Positions 31,001 through 46,336 of a stretch of 64,000 nucleotides of DNA are shown in pieces. This DNA is from Adineta vaga (lineage: Eukaryota; Animalia; Rotifera). Numbering within the stretch: position 1 is the stretch's first letter; every line of letters begins with the position of its first letter. The position numbers and the translations under genes were made by a program. The notes beneath the pieces are model-generated. The model was not told the origin of the DNA, ran no database searches, and worked only from the letters and a program-made list of their open reading frames with translations. The DNA is taken from NCBI GenBank assembly GCA_021613535.1, contig CP075493.1:10230001-10294000 (forward strand). Direction: 5' to 3'.

Positions 31001-33742
31001 AAACTAAAATCTTGAGAAAACTATCTTATTTAGTTAATAGTCATTCGAATACTGTCTATCCCGAAGAAATTAATCGTAAGTTCAGTTAACAAATCAAATA
31101 AGATATTCGTTTGAACTAATAATATTTAGCAAACAAATGAATTTCATGGGATTTATTTTCTATACATGTGTGTGTGTTTGTGTTTGCACACTTAGCTTCA
31201 TATACTGATATGCTCTTCTTGTTCTTGAAAAACAATTGATCTTTTTCTTCTCCTCTAGGAAATGATAATGATGGAAATGAAAGTGATACTGAAAAGGGTA
31301 ATCTTCGCGTCTCTCGCAAACCACTAATGCGTACACTAACCAGTACTGATAATAAACTAACTAACAACTCTTATGAACAAGATTCTCAATCCCAACGAAT
31401 GTCCAATTGGCGTCATTCAAAAACGAATTTAAATCGTTTACGATCACTTGATTCATTCGAAGCCGGTCAGGATGATCATGCTGCTCATACTAATGCTGCT
31501 CTTCCTTCTAATCGATTTCGCTCGCAAAATGCTTTTAATAAATTTGTTCACCAGACCATAGATTTTGCACGACGTAGGTGATATTTTTTTTTGATTATTT
31601 TGATTTCATTAATCAATCGATTGTTGCTCACTAACAATGAAATAAAGAAAATGATTATTCATGTTTTTCTTCTCTCCTTCGATTACAGACGATCAAACAC
31701 AAAATGAACCAAAAGTGTTTGATGACGATGAAGGAGCTATTCGACGACAACAAAGATATGCTGGTAAATGGCGACGATTGGCAAAAGTAAATAATGCAAA
31801 ACAATCGAATATGTAATGAATCATTTCTTTGAATAGATCATAAGAAAAAGCAGCAGCGAAGAAGAAAATTCCGAAGATGAAGAAAAACCTGAAGAACCTC
31901 AATCTATCATTGGTCCATCACCTGTTATCGATACAAAACATCGCTATTTTATTGGAAAAGATTATTCAAATCCATATGAAAAAGATTTTGAAATTCTTGA
32001 AAAATATGCTGAAGGTAAGTAACAAGAATTTTTTATTACATAATATGAAATTATTTATCGGATTGATTTCTAATAGATTTTATTGATCGAAAAGCCGTTC
32101 CTCGAATGCCATGGCATGACGAACGAAGCACTTGTTGTATTTGGACAAGCTGCTCGTGATGTCGCCAGACATTTTATTCAACGATGGAATATTCATAAAG
32201 TATTTCTTAATGAAAATCAATTTCATGTGAAATTGTATCTTGATTTTCTTTTAGTGTGAAAAATTTCTTTATAATGATTCTTATCCATTCCTATTACCAA
32301 AGACTTATGATGATCCTGATGAATTACGAGTGACTAATTGGAAAGATTTTCTCGATGCTCCACCATGTAAAGTTGATGCTCAGTGTGTTCGATCAGTAGG
32401 GACATGGTCTATAGGTACAAGAACAATTGAATCATCGATACAAAATGCTTATATACAAATGATTGATGCAGCGAAATATTATATTTATATAGAAGTATAT
32501 TAATCTATTGATATTCACTTTAATTCTATGAACTGTTTTAGAATCAATTTTTTATTACCATAGCTGATGATGCCGTAGTTAAAAATCAATTGGCTGAAGC
32601 ACTTTTCCGTCGAGTATTACGAGCGCATGCGTTAGTACATTGAATTTCTTAATTTCAATAAATCGACTTTTTCTGTTTTAGTTCAAATGAAAAATTTCGT
32701 ATTTATATTGTTCTTCCTCTTTTACCTGGCTTTGATAATGTTAATGCAGTTCAAGCTGTACTCTATTTTATTATGCGTTCGATTACAAAAGGTGAACAAT
32801 CATTATTTAAACGATTGGAAAATGCTGGTAAATATATTTGACTATTTTGATCGATTCTGAATCTTTCTCGTTGGTCTTCAGGTGTACCACCAGATGATTA
32901 TATTAGTTTTTATGGTATGCGTGCTCATGATGTTCTAATGGGTGTTTTAGTAAGTGATGAAGAAGAAGAAGAAGAAGAAGGAATCGATGTTTTTATATTC
33001 GTCAATTTAGGTAACTGAAATCATCTACGTTCATTCGAAATTAATGATAATTGATGACCGCATGGCAATATGTGGTAGTGCTAACATTAATGATCGTTCG
33101 TTACTTGGTCAACGTGATAGTGAATTTGGTATTGTAATAAATGATCTTGAAGAAGAAGACGGTATGTTTAATGGAAAAAAGATACTTGTCGGCAAATTCT
33201 GTTCCAGTTGGAGAAAACAACTTTTTGCGTATGTATAAATTCAACCATGAAATTATTTACTTTTCTTCTTTTCGTAGAATGATGTTAGGTATTCAATTCG
33301 AAAATCCAAAAAATATCGATATTAATGATCCAACATCTGATGAATTCTATGATTATTTTCGTGGTGTAGCAAAAAAAAATACATTAATCTATGAAGAAGT
33401 TTTTGCTACATTACCGAGTGATCGTGTTCGACGATTTGATCAAGTTGGTCAATATACAGAAGTGCCAAAATTGAAAGATACTGATCCGATACAAGTTCGA
33501 TTTTGATTCTAATACTTTTTTGTTTTGTAAATAATCATTTTTTTTGTTCGTTTTCAGGCACAAGATAAATTAAAAGCCGTACAAGGTTTAGTCGTCGAAT
33601 ATCCATTGTATTTTCTTGATGATGAAAATTATTTACCAAGTCTTCGAACTCGTGAAGGTAACGTTTGATGCAACTGTTGGTTCGATTATCTAAGATGATT
33701 TTGTTTATTTTAGGTCTTGTTCCAAATGTTATGTGGACCTAA
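28081..33742 (+). CDS. PLD: Phospholipase D1/2 (PX-PH-HKD-HKD), many exons; apparent 4-nt duplication frameshift at 32121-32124
   Basis: [13 protein letters not shown]; HKD1 [28 protein letters not shown]; PRMPWHD; YIYIENQFF; HKD2 [22 protein letters not shown]; C-terminal VPNVMWT*. Confidence 0.93.
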
Positions 33743-33905
33743 TTTGTCTTTCTTATTTTTTCATTATAAAAGAATGAAGTAATATAATCGTATATATATA
33801 TATTTTTTTTCTTTTTCGGTGAGATAAATAATGAATTTGAGAAACAGAAAACTAAGTTATCTTGATTATTCTTCTTTTTACAAATCTGTGCTAGGTTGTG
33901 TTTAT

Positions 33906-34287
33906 TCAGTTCAATTTCCGTTTTCTGTGATTTTGTAATCTATTTTCGTTCCGTATATCAAACTTCATTTCATCGTTCTTTTCTTCTTCTTCTTTTTTTT
34001 TAATGTCGACTGCTCAAATCTTGTTGATGGTATGCTTGATTGTTACATAACTATATATATATATAAATATACAGACGAGGATATAAATAAATGTCTAAGC
34101 AATAATATGCTTTGTTTTGTAATTCAAAAAGCAAAGTAAAAAGACACAACAAAAAAGAAGAACACAGAAATGCTGTTTGGAATATCGTTTTAATCCTGTT
34201 TATTGGTATTCGTCGAAAGTTTTGGTCGAGTTACTGTTCGGAGCATTAAACGAACACGAATGACACCTAGAAAAGAAAAGAAAAGAA
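33906..34287. repeat. Direct repeat copy A (orphan last exon and 3' UTR of the AGPAT gene)
   Basis: Near-identical to 44364-44726; differs by a ~20-nt indel near 34069-34088 and a few substitutions. Confidence 0.95.
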
Positions 34288-34560
34288 GGGTGTGGGTGTT
34301 AGATAGATGTAATACTAACATCCTCAGACCAGAAGATCCTTGGATCCGTAGACCCGTGGACCCAAAGATATACATGAATGAATGAATGTATGTATGTATA
34401 TAATTATATAGGTAGAGAATTATGAAGACCCGAAGATATGAGCATATCAGAATTGATAAAGTAGGAAGGTATACATGTGTATATATACATAGGTAGAGAA
34501 TTATGAAGATCGGAAGACACGTAGACCCACAGTGTTCAAAAGTAATTTAGTTGAAAATAT
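34288..34560 (-). mobile_element. Candidate 3' terminus of an Athena/Terminon-type Penelope-like retroelement: telomeric seed, hammerhead half-core and short tandem repeats
   Basis: GGGTGTGGGTGT at 34288-34299; minus strand reads CUGAGGA-UGUUAG..CUAACA-CCCACACCC; two copies of ATAGGTAGAGAATTATGAAGA (~34408, ~34489); TGAA/TGTA microsatellites; inner boundary uncertain. Confidence 0.6.
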
Positions 34561-34925
34561 CCAATTGGCTAATACATTTTTCAGCATTAGTCGTGAATTA
34601 AGGTGACTCAATGAACATAGTACTTAAAATGTATCTGGCGATGGTTAAATGAAATGATTAGGATCGTGAAAAATGTTTTGAAGAATGGAGAGCAGCGCTA
34701 CCTAGACATGTAAGAATGGCTGTCATTCATTATATAAAAGCAATTTTTCTCTCGACCCGTATACCCACGGTTGTGTGAGAAAAGGATGTCCCTTGCGATT
34801 TTGAATTCAGAAAGAATTCAAAAAGACCATAGAGTCGGATATGTTCCCTCGTAAGTGAAAAAGTTTGTCTATGATAATATAGATTTATTCTTCGATTAAA
34901 AAAAAGAGAAAAAAATGAAATTAAA

Positions 34926-36201
34926 TCAAAGAACTTTCGCTAAAGCTAAAGCAGCTGAAACAATCGAACCAGCTGCAGTCATTAAATAAGCTGCTCTTTC
35001 ACAATTATTAACTCCAACGATTGATGAAGGACGAACCATAAAAGTAACTGTTGCAAGAAGACCATTACTCATTCCCATTAATGTTATTAAACCAAGAAGT
35101 AAGTAATTATCAGTTGAATGACGAAAAAATATAATTATAATAGATGCTGTTCTTAAAATAGAACAAATGAGACAAAAAGTTTTTCTGAAAAAAATCGATG
35201 AAGTTTAATAGCTATTGTTCGACCAATAAGATCTCCACTATTAAATGTGATAATAACAAATGGAGAACACCACCAATCTTTTCCAGTATCTCTAAACCAA
35301 CGAGTTTTTGTTACACCACATGGAATACCTGGCCATAATAATAAACTTATAAATAAAACATAAAATTGAACGAATAAATGAATTTTTAAAATTTTCGCTA
35401 ATCTACAAAATGAAAGTTCACCCTCAACAAGTTGTAATTGAACAATATTTTCATTTTGTTCACGTTGAAATGAAGCCATTGGTTGATTAACTCTTCCACT
35501 AATTGATGGAAGGTTAATTAAACGATAATAAACATAAATTGCAACAAAACATAAGAAAATTAAAACACCCATAAAGATATAAAATGATACTTGATCAACT
35601 TAACTTGAATCACTATGAGCAAGTAAAACAATTAACCGATTCAGCACGATTCGATTTTATTACAGTGTAATGTCGCCCACCGCTGGACGACATCGTGTTG
35701 AATGGGTTAAGCAAATAATTCTATTTGCACTAGCATTAAAAAATCCAGCTATACCCTAGATTGATGATTCAGTTAATGTATTCAATGCTCCAACAGCTGC
35801 AAACGCAAATATTAATAAATATTGATTTTTTTCTTGAGGTAACTAAGATTTCAATGATTATATAACCAATATAACCAGGTATAATACGTTTTGTAAATCC
35901 AAAATTATAAACACGTTAAACTAATTGAATTATACGAAGTAAAAACATAGCTGAACCAGCTGACACTGTTCCCCAAAATTCTGAATTAGCACGGGGAAAG
36001 ATATGGAGATAATAATTTTGTGCGGATATTAATGATTCATATCCCCATAAGACAACTTAAATTAAGAAAAAGAAGATAGCAATAGATTTTTCGATGATAT
36101 TTGATTAGATCAGCGTCGTCGTTTTGTACTACAGGAACCAATTCGACTATATTTATCTGTAAATTTTCTTTTCTATCATCTCTCATTATATCCATTTTCA
36201 T
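34926..36201 (-). pseudogene. Equilibrative nucleoside transporter (ENT/SLC29) pseudogene, apparently intronless
   Basis: LLWPG, ITFNSGDLIGR, LMGMSNGLLAT, ERAAYLM motifs; frameshift near 36043, stops, and a MITE insertion. Confidence 0.75.
35636..35706. mobile_element. 71-bp piggyBac-type MITE
   Basis: TTAA on both sides (35632-35635, 35707-35710); TIRs CCGATTCAGCACGAT / ATCGTGTTGAATGGG (13/15 complementary); excision restores ENT text ..NRIICLIVLLAH.. Confidence 0.8.
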
Positions 36202-36479
36202 ATCTAAAGAAGAAATGAATTTTTTCAGATGAACAAACTATCCTTCATACTTGCGAGGTAAATGATAAAGAAATATTAATATTCTGATGTGTTACAGAAA
36301 AAGAAATAATAATAATGAATCTCATATCTTATCTTTTGACCATCATTTTTATTGGAATTATACACATGACAAATAATTTCATTATTTTTTCGTTCTAAAC
36401 TAGGTCGAATCTTTGTTTTCTTTTCTCGATTCCGATGAAATTTCAGGATTTTTTTTCATGCGAAGAAAAACAAAGATAA

Positions 36480-37515
36480 AAATGCTGATATGAAACATTA
36501 TTGTTGTGGTGCAGTTAAAGTCCTTCTTTTGATAAACAATATTGATAGAGTTATTAAAATCTTCTTTATATTCCTTGAAATTTTATCCTATCTATTGACA
36601 GTTCATAATTTATACGATTTTATCGCCTTTTTAATTAGCTTTTCAAGTGTAATCGGATAAAATTGAAAAATTTTCACGGATGATACACAGATCCTGAACT
36701 TCATATTTAAAAAAATGACCTCCTTATTCTGTTTTAATGGTCAAATTATTAAGTCATATATCACTAATGCGTTCCAATAAATTTCATGCAAAAAGATGCA
36801 AACAATAATTATTTCTGATCAAAGTTTATTAAAGACAAGAGTAACATCGTTAAAGAAATCTATGAAAAAAGACAAAATTGAACTATTTGAATAGAGTTCA
36901 AGTTGATTTTCAACACTCAAGTAGTTCATATTGTCTTCTTCTTCCTACAGATAAAAACAAAAATGTATGTTCATCTTCTCAAACTTCTGATCATTTTCGT
37001 TGCTCTTGTTGTCGACGTTCTAAATGGAACAAAATGCTAATATACGATACAGTGCAGTTCTTGGCTTACCTGTTAACAAGCCTTGTAATTGTCCATAGTT
37101 TAACATCCGCTCCTGGCACTAGAATACAACAAATCGATCAGCATTTTTATTATCCTATTTTCAGTGTATTGAATTTATTTTCATCAATTATTGTACGAAC
37201 CTTATTCATGAAATGCAGATTGATATTGTACACTGTAACAGCAGTAGAATCTGGCTTTTGGACTTCTGCCACCATTGCCGATGATAAATCATTCAATTCC
37301 TTGTCAAGAGTATCAATCTGTTGGACCAAAAGTTCTATCTAAACATGAAAACAAAAACTAGAATCATGAGACAAATAATGGAGATATATCATGCAGTAAA
37401 ACAGAAAAATTCAAAAACAATTCTCAATATCAACTGGCATTTGTCTTTCCATATTCATGGAGATTCTTACTGGATCAATGGCCATTATTTTTATGATGGT
37501 GGAATGAGAATATGA
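36480..37515 (+). pseudogene. Decayed multi-pass membrane protein gene of unknown family
   Basis: Consecutive hydrophobic protein-like frames (HYCCGAVKVLLLI.., 36878-37342, 37321-37515) broken by stops and frameshifts. Confidence 0.35.
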
Positions 37516-38480
37516 TATTCATGCACATTTGTACAGATTTATATATATATATATCATCCCGTCATCAGATTAGTCGGAAACAAAACAGCAACGTTGAACA
37601 AGAAATAATGATAGAAAAGAAAGAAAGAAAAAAGAAAAGATAAACATCATGCGGACGAGCATTGTTAAGGTCATGCACAAAAAAGTTAGTCGAGTAGAAT
37701 TAAAAAAAAGTCGAATACCCTGTCCTGTCTAGAGACGAACAAAAATGATATAACAATCACAATACTCAATATATATTCATTTCGAGATACTTTACGTACA
37801 TTGTTTTTGGTTGCGATGCTGCGATATTGGACATTTTTTAATGTGATCAAGAAGTTTTTGATTGCAATCTACAAAATAGTACACTTTTAAACATCGATCG
37901 ATGCAAATGAAAAAGACAGAAATTAAGAAACAATTTCACATAATTTAACTTACAAAACATTTTAGATTACAATACCTTCAAAGAATTTTACACGAAACTT
38001 TCCCTACTGTGTGTGAAATCTCAAATAGTTTTACGCGAAACTTTTTTGAAAGTTTCGTGATTTTTGTAATACTCAAAAAGTATACTAACGTTCTTTCGTA
38101 TGTTATGATGCCTATTTTCAATCCAATATAGTATAATCGTATAAGTTGATATATAGTAGTAAATCGTTTACACGATGTCTTTGTTATTATCTCGTCGCGC
38201 CATTCGTTTTTATGGAAGTTCAGTGTTGGGTGAAGAAAAATTCCGAATAGATATCGCTTCACTTTGATTTAATCAAAATAAATTAGAAAAACGAAAATAA
38301 AAAATTTCAAATAAAAAAAATAAATAAAAGCAGAAAAAAATATTTTTTTCTGAAAAGAATAAAATGTTGAGGGTCAGTATCAGTAGTTACGATTTTATGT
38401 AATAATAATCTGTCTATGGAAGTAAAATAACTGATGATCTGAAATAATAAGTCGAGGATTAAAACAGAAAATCAAAAGAA

Positions 38481-41970
<3,490 letters not shown>

Positions 41971-41977
41971 GCATAGC

Positions 41978-42174
41978 TGTCATAATGTCATTATACTCGG
42001 TATTCAGAGCTGAGCGTCTCGATACCCAATAGGATAGCCAAATATACTTGGTGAAACGATCTCCTTACCGGATAACCAAACTATATCCTTCAGAACCTGA
42101 GGAATTTGAGTAGATTTGGTCAGACGATCTCGTTATCCGATAGTCAAACTATTTACTGTAAACGCTTTATGATA
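41978..42174. mobile_element. Candidate solo LTR or small insertion
   Basis: Starts TGTCATAA, ends TTATGATA (one mismatch from perfect inverted TTATGACA); flanks ATAGC / ATAGT resemble a 5-bp TSD; internal ~30-bp imperfect repeat. Confidence 0.35.
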
Positions 42175-43252
42175 ATAGTTGATTCGATACATGCAGTCAT
42201 TCTATGCCGCATTTCTCATTATTTTATTTAGGAAAAAAAACATTTGATGTTACTATTAATGAGAAAATTTGTTAATATAAAAAAATCAATCAAATATATT
42301 CAGTAAGAGTGACACGTTTAAGTGGTATTGTATTAATCTATCTATAATACTGTATTGATCTTTTCATATACATCATCAAAGAGTGACATGCTGTATAAGC
42401 CTCGCAAATATTGTTTTAAGTTCAAGTCATACTCAACTTTGTTCAGTACATGATCGAAGACCATCACTAATTATTGGTGAATCTATTTTATTTCCATTAA
42501 TCTCATTTAAAAATCTTTCGAAAGAAGGTTGTTTTGAATCAATTAATCCGAGATGATATGATGGATTTCTATCTATTGCACTGAACGTAATAAGAGTTCC
42601 ATCACCTTTATTCAAAAGAAATCTAACTTATCGTTATTGATCATCGTTACTTAGTATTTTTTTAATATCAACAACAAATGGAACAGAAATAGTTATTTGT
42701 GAAAAAAACACACATTTGATATAGAAGTACAAAAGAGATTTTAACATTTTCTGGTTTTATTGATTATTTAGAATCTTAATGAAAAATACTTTTCTAAAAT
42801 ATATTTTAAAAAATCCTTGTATGATTATTTTGTTTAGACCTATTCATAAAACGAAATGATCGAAAATGGTTTTTTGATTCGATTTGTGTCCAATGAATAA
42901 CTGTATTCGTCAGATTCGTTCATTCTTTAAACCATTTAACTAACTGAAAGCAGAGGTGTGAATGAGCGTCTCTTTCTTTTACTCTCACACCCGCACTCAC
43001 AATTTTTTATCGAACTGCTGAGTGTATCATATCAGTAGAATATTGACTGGTGCTTTTTGTTCTTCAGTGAAAACTGCATTTTTTTGCCGAGAATAGGACT
43101 AAGTATATTAGACAGTATAAGAGCAATATTGATTTTCTATTTAATTCAAGATTATAACGTGTGCTTTCTAACCTTCGAAGAAAAATATATTCTCAAACAC
43201 CATCTATATATAAGGAAATAGAAAAACAGGTACCATCACAACACTATATTTT

Positions 43253-44027
43253 TCCTTCATTTCATTCCAAACTATGATCACAACAACTATCCATTGTTTC
43301 GTGCTTGCTCTCGCCAGGTAACATACATTTCGTGCTTTTAATTTTTAAAACATTAAACGATCTTTTATTGTAGCTTGACAGGTTTGATATTTGCTTTATT
43401 TTACAAATTTAGTTATTAATTTAGTTATTCCATAGTTCTAGTAAATTCTCACACATGTAACGACAAGTCTCCATATGATAAATGTTCGGCGAATAGTGCA
43501 TGTGGCTGTTTTCATCCGGTATAGCTTGGTAATGGTGATAGCTTTTGCGGTTTTCTCTATGTGACTTGTTCTGAACTTGTTTCGTGCGACATTTCAAATA
43601 GTAATTGCTATGAGTCTGAATATATTTGTGCTCATCATCCTTAATGTCATGATCGTCCTGTTTGTTACCCGTACTTAATGACTACTTCTGAAATCTGTCC
43701 ACCGATTACAAGTAAGCGAACAAAGAGCTGTCAATTAATTGATGTGAAACTGTAGTTTTCAATGAAAATCCGAATTTTCTTGAGCGCGCTGTAGGATAAA
43801 CTGAAATACAATCTTTGTTTCAGTCTCGTCGATCTGTAGGAACGTTCTTCTTTCAAACTGTTAAGACTTGACTTAAAAACCATATTTAATAACTTGTGCG
43901 CCGTTCTTGAATAACGATAAAAAATCTACTGAAAAGCTTCTTCATATGAATGTTCTCTTTTGATGATTAATGACAAACATTACAACAGCAACAACAACAA
44001 CTTCGACTACAAGCATCACAACGACAA
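43253..44027 (+). pseudogene. Decayed secreted Cys-rich protein with Thr-rich linker
   Basis: Reads CSANSACGCFHPV*..FCGFLYVTCSELVSC..CAHHP*CHDRPVCYP..ICPPIT with two in-frame stops; followed by TTATTTTSTTSITTT and a GT donor. Confidence 0.6.
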
Positions 44028-44363
44028 GTGAGTGTTTCAGTTTCTCCAAAAATTAGAGAAACTTTGAACTAATAAAACCTTTGTTTGAGCGATTTATTTC
44101 TTATTTTTATCGATAGAATCTTTACTTAAGAAAGACTTCTCCGCGAAGTCAAACTTTTCAGCAAGAATTAAAACTGAAATTCGCCATAAAAAATATACTA
44201 GTCTCCTCTTTCAGAATCTATGTTTCGGTCCAGATAATAGTCAATCAATATAGCTCATATAAACTGAAATGGAACTCTCATAAACTAGTTTCTGAATGAT
44301 TTACGGTGTCGATATGGCTCCAAAGATTGCAGAGATTCTACTTAAAAACTATATTCGCTAACG

Positions 44364-44726
44364 TCAGTTCAATTTCCGTTTTCTGTGATTTTGTAATCTA
44401 TTTTCGTTCCGTATATCAATCTACATTTCATCGTTCTTTTCTTCTTCTTCTTTTTTTTTAATGTCGACTGCTCAAATCTTGTTGATGGTATGCTTGATTG
44501 TTACATAACTATATATATATATAAATAAATGTCTAAGCAATAATATGCTTTGTTTTATAATTCAAAAAGCAAAGTAAAAAGACACAACAAAAAAAGAAGA
44601 ACACAGAAATGCTGTTTGGAATATCGTTTTAATCCTGTTTATTGGTGTTCGTCGAAAGTTTTGGTCGAGTTGCTGTTCGGAGCATTAAACGAACACCAAT
44701 GACACCTAGAAAAGAAAAGAAAAGAA
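44364..44726. repeat. Direct repeat copy B (functional last exon and 3' UTR of AGPAT)
   Basis: Near-identical to 33906-34287. Confidence 0.95.
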
Positions 44727-46336
44727 ATGTATTAGTATAAAATATTTATAATTAATTTTGATCGTTCAAAGAAATTACTAATCATTTTCGGAGTAAACAT
44801 TTCTCGATTCTAATTCATCGCTAGGGAGAGATTTACCTGCAATCACAATGAGAAAAAAAATCAATTGTGAAAAGATCGATGCTGTTAGAAGAAATTTGAT
44901 AAAGAGATAAATCGAAGGTAGACCAATGAAAATTAAACAACAGAGTTCAATAATTAAATCTTGTTTTCGACGATGTAAATTCGTAGCTTTTGGATTTCCA
45001 GCACCATCAAATGTTCCATGTTGAACAAAATAATCGAATATTTTATCCTTTAAAATTCGAAGACAACATTCAATAGACAATCACCAACAAGAATTACTTT
45101 TTCCTGAAAAAGTTTATGAATAAATTCTGCAGCTTTTTTCTCATCATCGTATGGAATTTCTGTAATAGGTATACGACGAATGAATGATTCAGCAAGACAA
45201 CGTTGACCAACTAACATATTTGATAATTCAGGTGATTGAGGTGTTTGAAAAGCAACATTTATATCATAAACGGCCGTAACTAATCAATAGATAGAACTGT
45301 ATTTAAAAATAAAGAATTGATTTGACATAAAAATTCTTACTGTGTTTATGAAGACCTCGTATTAGAAGAGCAAAACCTTTTGTTCGTGGTAGAATATGAT
45401 GTTTTAGTTCAGGTAGACCTTTTTCTCGTGCAACCTTCATGCTATCGAGGCGTTTTTCATTTGTATAACGAGTTCCTTCACATGAGAGAAATAACTAAAG
45501 TTTAAATATAGACAATTATTTGATCAAAGAAGAATAACCTACAGTAAAATTATAATTTTTTGGAAAATCCTCAACAAGTCGTTGCATATCACGTTCGAGA
45601 ACAGCTTTATCGGAATCCCATTGACGTCGTAAGAAGATTGATTCCGTAAAATACCAACACCAACCAATAATTGGTAAAGCACGAAGTGAGCTTTTACCAA
45701 GAATTTTCGAACCCTAATGAAAACACAAGACCAATAAAAAATAATTTCCGTTGTTAACAAAATTTGATTACTTACTCCAGCTAATCCAAGTCTCTGTGTA
45801 ATAACCCATCCAAGTAACCAATCGACTTCATAACGATGATTTCCAAGCCAAATTGCATTTTCTCGCCGGAGATTTTCTAAATCTTCCGGTTTAATATAAA
45901 CGACAATGTCGGAATTAGACCTAGATAATCAGAAAACAAAATCAATCAATCTTTTTCTTCTCTCTTCCCCTAAACAACAGATTTAACTGCAATATCAGAG
46001 AAAAATTTCTCTTCTGATTAATTATCGAATCGATAAGAAATAAAAACTTACCACCACTGATAGATAAATGTCAATGCTATGAATAGATCAGAAAGACAAA
46101 TTCGATGACATAAAAACGAAAAGAAAATACTTACGACTCCAAATAACTGTTGCTAAATGATAATTTATTTGTCGATATAATGCACGATTAAACGGCCAAA
46201 TAAAAAAGGCAGAAAGTAATTGAAGAAGATTCACAAATAGACCAGTTACAAGAAATACGTAACCGAGAAATAGTTGAACGATAATTAGTCCTTTAATTGG
46301 ATGTCTATACGATTGATTTTCGATCGATCCGGACAT
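44629..46336 (-). CDS. 1-acylglycerol-3-phosphate acyltransferase gamma/delta (AGPAT3/4-like), multi-exon
   Basis: Catalytic NHRYEVDW (NHX4D), CEGTRYT, LPELKHHILPRTKGF, AVYDINVAF, FIRRIPI; 25-nt microexon ~46052-46076. Confidence 0.9.

Follow-up and report, generated by a model that had tools for sequence, protein, structure and literature searches.

Bdelloid rotifers can withstand massive breakage of their chromosomes, and their genomes contain a large amount of captured DNA. Retroelements that attach to telomeres have already been described at chromosome ends. In Adineta vaga, the genome is organised in six chromosomes, of which chromosome 1 is homoeologous to chromosome 4, with the telomere unit (TGTGGG)n and a mean heterozygosity of 1.7% (PMC8494291). 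The closest described structures are the 3' termini of Terminon/Athena elements, which are Penelope-like retroelements deficient in endonuclease and carry short telomeric repeats in reverse complement, (ACACCC/TCACCC)n, in a position that allows pairing with G-rich 3' ends (PMC6431247, PMC8557442), and in Terminons these C-rich repeats lie immediately downstream of a ribozyme fold (PMC6431247). Moreover, neotelomere and Athena scars, in which TGTGGG repeats and Athena-related sequence stand directly at break junctions, have been published for A. vaga breakpoints, and the scars at deletion breakpoints were interpreted as transient capping of broken ends (PMC13564844). Two further arrangements are relevant, namely head-to-head interstitial telomere fusions such as human 2q13, and Penelope-like insertions, which often carry an inverted 5'-truncated copy, so that both outer ends are 3' ends (PMC8557442).

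The window, that is, the whole stretch of DNA analysed here, comprises 64 kb of chromosome 1 (10,230,001-10,294,000) in a genome of 100.8 Mb in six pieces, and the coordinates of its features are collected in the table. A sequence-only reading had placed the end of a homology at 34287 and the start of a telomeric repeat at 34288, and self-comparison found both to be exact to the base. From the first base past the left direct repeat (DR1), the plus strand reads GGGTGTGGGTGT at 34288-34299, which is two perfect TGTGGG units, followed by a spacer and by ACATCCTCAGA, in which the second arm has decayed; a G-rich tract, a spacer and a C-rich tract therefore stand on one strand. The minus strand contains, in order, CTGAGGA (34327-34321), TGTTAG, the 12-nt TATTACATCTAT, CTAACA and CCCACACCC, and so the letters described earlier for this strand, a CTGAGGA with a 6-bp hairpin, a 12-nt loop and C-rich repeats, are all present. 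It ends in ...CTAACACCCACACCC, which abuts DR1 and places reverse-complement telomeric repeats at the 3' end, next to proximal DNA. The TGTGGG tract runs in the direction expected if the left-hand DNA had been extended at its 3' end, and this polarity fits attachment to a break, as had been proposed. The assumed telomere unit is likewise borne out by the literature (PMC8494291, PMC7943196), and TGTGGG arrays are also present in the genome sequence, mostly towards chromosome ends. A telomeric 12-mer in any phase occurs once in the 64-kb window, at 34288, while about 0.004 would be expected from base composition. The seam lies between unrelated DNA, with the DR1 copy on one side and a rearranged repeat and a foreign block on the other, and at 10.26 of 18.1 Mb on chromosome 1 its position is mid-chromosome and gene-dense. 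The window seam comprises just two repeat units, and its fold is weak (z = -1.1 and -2.5); there is no outer leader on the DR1 side, and a degenerate CCTCAGA is found on the other side.

Features of the window seam, its flanks and related palindromes (window coordinates unless a chromosome is named)
Feature	Position	Strand	Description
G-rich arm	34288-34299	+	Two perfect telomeric units GGGTGTGGGTGT; C-rich arm when read on the minus strand
Family core, 22 nt, GTTAGTATTACATCTATCTAAC	34298-34319	-	5-bp inner stem GTTAG/CTAAC with 12-nt loop
Decayed second arm	34320-34330	-	Minus strand TCTGAGGAT, contains CTGAGGA; plus strand ATCCTCAGA, a degenerate ACCCTCAAGAT
DR1, left direct repeat	33906-34287		382-bp copy of 44364-44726; left part transcribed as phospholipase D 3'UTR
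DR2, right direct repeat	44364-44726		Contiguous with the AGPAT gene, minus strand, 44781-46336
Block between the direct repeats, 10.1 kb	34288-44363		Mosaic; absent from the homoeologous region on chromosome 4
Foldback/MITE-like arm pieces	34331-34518		Inverted relative to canonical copies; internal 53-bp duplication 34384-34436 / 34465-34517
Other half of the same foldback/MITE-like repeat	34515-34836		Includes terminal inverted repeat 34804-34830
ENT-like transporter gene	~34.9-36.1 kb	-	In the block; split by introns
Tubulin-tyrosine-ligase-like (TTL-like) gene	~38.3-42.0 kb	+	In the block; split by introns
L082, L084, L088	Chromosome 1 at 17.40 and 16.16 Mb, chromosome 3 at 17.06 Mb		G-arm/spacer/C-arm palindromes

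The two direct repeats differ by 6 substitutions (1.66%) and 21 gap columns, which comprise one 20-bp and one 1-bp indel. To the left of DR1 lies a phospholipase D gene on the plus strand (Pfam PLDc), and a contig from one probable RNA run, at 32542-34079 of the window, represents its mRNA with five GT..AG introns of 49-63 nt; the last exon on this contig is 33712-34079, and the 3'UTR runs into DR1. To the right of DR2 lies an AGPAT-type acyltransferase gene on the minus strand, and the stop of its last long reading frame lies about 52 nt short of DR2. The duplicated segment may be 3' or intergenic DNA shared by these two convergent genes.

The block between the repeats is genomic DNA with intron-bearing host genes and not a retroelement copy; a processed, RNA-derived 10-kb insert was considered, but it does not agree with the split genes that lie on either strand of the block, and was discarded. 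On the chromosome 4 homoeologue, the counterparts of window positions 33743 and 47887 are just 857 bp apart. A genome search assigned the flank next to the seam (34331-34860), which was considered as a pLTR, to a rearranged foldback/MITE-like repeat dispersed over chromosome cores, and a pLTR is thereby ruled out. This family, for which loci L002-L020 were compared, is about 600 bp long with a 27-nt terminal inverted repeat, and at least 18 copies of it, 73-79% identical, are scattered through the genome, mostly at mid-chromosome positions; the inverted arm at 34331-34518 is without its terminal repeat. Elsewhere the block contains repeats and, at 36884-37482, 600 bp that are 93% identical to chromosome 1 at 10,832,676-10,833,275, about 570 kb away, a much higher identity than the 71-79% that the neighbouring block genes show to chromosome 4. 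These genes, the ENT-like (34929-36102) and the TTL-like (38263-41969), match chromosome 4 at 0.56 and 0.63-0.64 Mb, respectively, about 1 Mb from the counterpart of the window flanks (1.59-1.62 Mb), and neither has another copy on chromosome 1.

The first 33-43 bases of the segment from 34288 occur many times in the genome. The 22-nt core has at least 105 genomic matches at up to 3 mismatches, compared with 3 for a reversed control, and the sister variant GTGGGTACTACATCTATCTAAC contributes 43 further copies with no more than 1 mismatch. An alignment was made of the 30 best family copies, to which the consensus, flank and box counts refer. Their consensus is a palindrome composed of ATCTTGAGGG(TGTGGG)n, GTTAG, TATTACATCTAT, CTAAC and (CCCACA)n/(ACCCAC)n CCCTCAAGAT. 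The spacer TATTACATCTATCTAAC is invariant throughout the seam family, and around this fixed 17-nt centre the arms, which measure 7-40 nt, vary in length and truncation from copy to copy. The constant outer leader ATCTTGAGGG / CCCTCAAGAT is found on 8/30 left arms and 12/30 right arms, and some copies have defined ends, ATCTTGA... and ...TCAAGAT. Full family copies fold as strong hairpins (z = -4.6 and -4.8), and no target-site duplications were seen around them. Unique DNA lies directly outside both arms in about 17 of the 30 copies, and thus the palindrome is the sole shared unit, set between unrelated sequences; the remaining copies fall into a few flank families, one of which is a larger foldback. 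Most family copies lie within a few Mb of chromosome ends, to which the window copy is an exception. In the distal 3 Mb of chromosome 3, seam copies are present on both strands in about equal numbers, so the spacer has no fixed orientation to the chromosome end. A full-text literature search with the 17-nt spacer sequence gave no match, and no description of a palindromic unit with a fixed spacer was found in the literature, whose coverage here was partial; short interstitial telomeric stretches in subtelomeres have already been published (PMC2861651).

On the minus strand at 34298-34311, the stem top and loop of the GTTAG subfamily spell TAGTATTAC, the nonamer of circovirus and nanovirus origins, and one variant reads TAATATTAC, which is the geminivirus form. 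Terminons have been reported to carry Rep genes (PMC6431247). A rolling-circle origin is nevertheless considered improbable and the match is taken as a probable coincidence, as the larger sister subfamily, GTGGG, reads GGGTACTAC at the place of the nonamer, and a search of the genome for Pfam Viral_Rep, run without a positive control, gave no match.

The arms of the seam can be compared directly with the Terminon/Athena 3' tips of the same genome. About 10-30 nt past the genuine hammerheads of this genome stand ACTCACCC...(ACACCC/TCACCC)n...CCCTCAAGAT, in agreement with the published order of fold and C-rich repeats. The C-rich arm and the outer motif CCCTCAAGAT, which also terminates the seam family consensus, are the same as this tip, which argues that the seam arms derive from that tail. 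The two structures differ in that the window seam has no hammerhead before the repeats and no reverse transcriptase or Terminon ORF after them, and in that the seam has a G-rich inverted arm before the spacer and the window copy is mid-chromosome. A hammerhead fold just upstream of the C-rich repeats was absent at the window site according to Rfam, a pattern scan and a custom model, no reverse transcriptase domain was found among ten long reading frames scanned singly in the block, and no Athena body, hammerhead or ORF lies close to the window seam. Of the sequence-only reading of this site as a retroelement tail and break scar, the match of the C-rich arm to the Terminon/Athena tip has held up, while the hammerhead, the pLTR and the element body have not.

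Head-to-tail addition of a Terminon does not predict a G-rich inverted arm upstream on the same strand. Instead, each flank looks onto an inward tail, which is the arrangement of a head-to-head fusion and also of the inverted twin structures that are typical of Penelope-like insertions (PMC8557442). The inverted twins differ from the seam in that its centre is the fixed 17-nt spacer and not an element body. Head-to-head interstitial telomere fusions of the human 2q13 type share the arrangement of a G-rich and then a C-rich tract along one strand, while the seam arms are far shorter (7-40 nt) and the seam centre is a fixed spacer rather than eroded telomere. The scars of PMC13564844 come from clipped reads of experimental lines, whereas the seam is a fixed palindrome in the reference genome, with a constant spacer common to about 150 loci. 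Three palindromes (L082, L084 and L088) with the arms ATCTTGAGGG.../...CCCTCAAGAT and other spacers of 12-30 nt were observed 25-90 nt upstream of genuine Terminon hammerheads. One divergent copy of the window-type spacer lies 117 nt upstream of a hammerhead.

We consider it probable, for the whole reading including the repair that it implies, that 34288-34328 belongs to a dispersed family of head-to-head telomere-repeat seams, which arose in break repair and join unrelated DNA. The exact junction, the sole telomeric 12-mer of the window, the arms that copy the Terminon tip and the lack of the block on chromosome 4 all speak for such a seam. Counting against it are the two repeat units, the decayed second arm and the weak fold of the window copy, together with the right end of the block (44363/44364), where no seam was found; furthermore, a small mobile unit would likewise account for a spacer that is fixed in about 150 copies. 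Such a seam would start from a double-strand break, which may have been at the fragile foldback repeat, because three further rearrangement points lie within 250 bp. The free 3' end would then be extended on a C-rich template resembling the Terminon tail, with reverse transcriptase and telomerase both as candidate enzymes, and the tailed end would subsequently be joined tail-to-tail to another tailed end. This joining would have stitched in the 10-kb block and duplicated the 382 bp, in an event carried by one homologue only, and a 382-bp duplication with allelic-level divergence would fit the ends of two homologues broken at staggered positions. An insertion here and a later loss of the block from the other homologue, through annealing of the 382-bp repeats, are equally possible.

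The scenario of the sequence-only reading, in which the break healed into a working telomere with telomerase repeats and an Athena/Terminon end added to it, remained a chromosome end for a time and only afterwards came to lie inside a chromosome again through fusion with other DNA, shares much of this evidence, since it also accounts for the polarity of addition to a 3' end at a break and for a C-rich arm that matches Terminon tips, and neotelomeres with Athena fragments are on record at A. vaga deletion breakpoints (PMC13564844). We nevertheless regard it as unlikely for this locus. The repeat is limited to two units, neither an Athena body nor a hammerhead or ORF is near, and intact genes flank this mid-chromosome site on either side. 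Moreover, a stereotyped palindrome with a fixed spacer at about 150 loci points to a templated unit and not to independent telomere growth and erosion. Instead of a neotelomere, a short templated tail may have been made and joined within one repair episode.

Much less probable still is a miniature mobile element, SINE- or MITE-like and about 50-80 bp long, that inserted alone, its place at the homology boundary being secondary. One spacer common to about 150 copies, the defined ends ATCTTGA... / ...TCAAGAT of some copies and the subset of copies within a larger foldback family would all be expected of such an element. However, the window copy begins precisely where the 382-bp duplication stops, and it adjoins a rearranged repeat; a chance hit on that boundary in the 64-kb window has a likelihood of about 1 in 10,000. 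In addition, full copies are without target-site duplications, and their arm lengths and truncations vary as expected of junction products.

The short-read data bear on the reality of the junction and on the number of homologues that carry it. Contigs of three short-read DNA runs (2013, 2015 and 2022), which stand under one organism label and may be from the same strain, were placed on 32500-37500 together with the one probable RNA run. The 2013 and 2022 runs share an identical unitig of 138 nt (34178-34315) that spans the junction, with 110 letters to the left and 28 to the right of 34287/34288, the latter below the 31-letter bridging rule, and the unitig 34291-34826 comes next in all three runs; the unitigs break at the seam because its words are repeated in the genome. 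The junction is real, as observed in these short-read unitigs. An apparent second haplotype, a contig that joins 34072 to 34897 via 35 other letters, was discarded as a low-complexity misplacement, since the 35 letters belong to chromosome 4 (11.914 Mb), where a (TA)n run and an A-run enclose them.

Depth over 34178-36933 is about half of that over the phospholipase D region in the 2013, 2015 and 2022 contigs (16 vs 29.7, 18-21 vs 33 and 57-71 vs 110), and therefore the block is probably on one homologue only. At sites 34208 and 34233, the DR1-type letters have depths of 15.7, 15.3 and 57.3 in the three runs and the DR2-type letters have 29.4, 31.4 and 93.2. These depths fit three repeat copies per diploid, with DR1, the block and DR2 on one homologue and a single DR2-like repeat on the other. 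The ENT-like gene may also be present on one homologue only, and the same is perhaps true of the TTL-like gene, given that neither has another copy on chromosome 1 and that depth is about half over the initial 2.6 kb of the block. An assembly artefact that joined two haplotypes or repeats, which would suit both the half depth of the block and a DR1/DR2 difference of 1.66%, near the mean allelic divergence of 1.7% (PMC8494291), has a negligible probability, as the junction-spanning unitigs are identical to the reference in the independent 2013 and 2022 sets at the depth of the adjoining unitigs, and full depth for DR2-type with half depth for DR1-type letters fits three real copies per diploid genome.

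The sequence-only reading had further proposed a hammerhead half-core at this site. The window resembles the type I hammerhead of Penelope-like elements (RF00163) only in the heptamer CUGAGGA and the hairpin of 6 bp that follows it, and differs in that it has no GAAA, helices I and III, cleavage site or covariance score, and in that the heptamer is not conserved in the family. The GAAA half is absent, as had been stated, with CCCACACCC coming directly after the hairpin in place of a GAAA box, and neither helix I or III nor a cleavage triplet was found at the window site. A CTGANGA within 30 nt occurs in 1 of the 30 family copies, which is the window copy itself. Before GTTAG the other copies carry telomere-type repeats, GGGTGT, TGAGGG or GGATGAGGGT, where the window has the decayed and shortened TCTGAGGAT, and the heptamer goes back to a TGAGGG-type repeat in the G-rich arm that has degenerated.

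Genuine hammerheads are present in this genome, with an RF00163 match of 33.6 bits on chromosome 3 and 23 copies by pattern search. They have the order (helix I) CTGATGAG TCC-CTTTAGCAA-GGA CGAAA (helix III) (helix I), and look wholly unlike the window sequence. Rfam gave no hammerhead in the window at the gathering threshold, nor around the site at E <= 10, and a whole-genome RF00163 search placed no ribozyme at the window site. Similarly, the complete CUGANGA..GAAA for which a search of other copies had been proposed was found in none of the 30 family loci, either by a pattern scan for CUGANGA, helix II and GAAA, which did find the controls, or by a covariance model; the same scan gave a single low-complexity match in the window, at 39999. 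The covariance model (R1), which was built from 21 genuine hammerhead copies of this genome, found nothing at 34288-34330, its best match in the window being elsewhere with E 0.59, and it gave no significant match on the 30 family loci, while the control L070 scored 64.7 bits. No hammerhead lies within 1.5 kb of the 30 best family copies. A hammerhead at the site was thus rejected by Rfam, the genome-wide RF00163 search, the pattern scan and the custom covariance model. With a heptamer conserved in 1 of 30 copies, a telomeric consensus at its place and no model match, the half-core is a coincidence, and the CUGAGGA of the window is, judged from its letters, a chance product of TGAGGG-type repeat decay with no predicted ribozyme role. 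That it is a decayed, once functional hammerhead of a Penelope-like element is extremely improbable, despite a CTGAGGA followed by a 6-bp hairpin, and a false lead is thereby removed, namely that of a ribozyme remnant at 34288-34330.

Compared with the telomere-attaching retroelements already published from chromosome ends and the telomere or Athena traces known from experimental breakpoints, this locus adds the same kind of scar in a gene-dense chromosome core, in a stereotyped palindromic form with a fixed spacer common to about 150 loci, and as a seam defined to the base at a structural variant that is apparently on one homologue only. It might even be speculated, as a tentative and rather unlikely extension of the break-repair seam, that the seams are products of a dedicated end-bridging reaction, in which a small hairpin RNA of the Terminon 3' tail would be copied onto a broken 3' end, followed by a jump to a second tailed end. 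The putative RNA would consist of the 17-nt spacer and the C-rich tail, perhaps with a defined 5' end, and an Athena-type reverse transcriptase or telomerase would do the copying. If true, bdelloids would use a retroelement-derived templated linker to stitch DNA fragments together, and would thereby have a means both of capturing genes and of surviving the shattering of chromosomes, and the half-depth, probably hemizygous, mid-chromosome copy would be a recent, testable product of it. Filled and empty alleles of this seam probably coexist in the laboratory strain, and therefore the choice between a templated tail with joining and a true neotelomere becomes testable.
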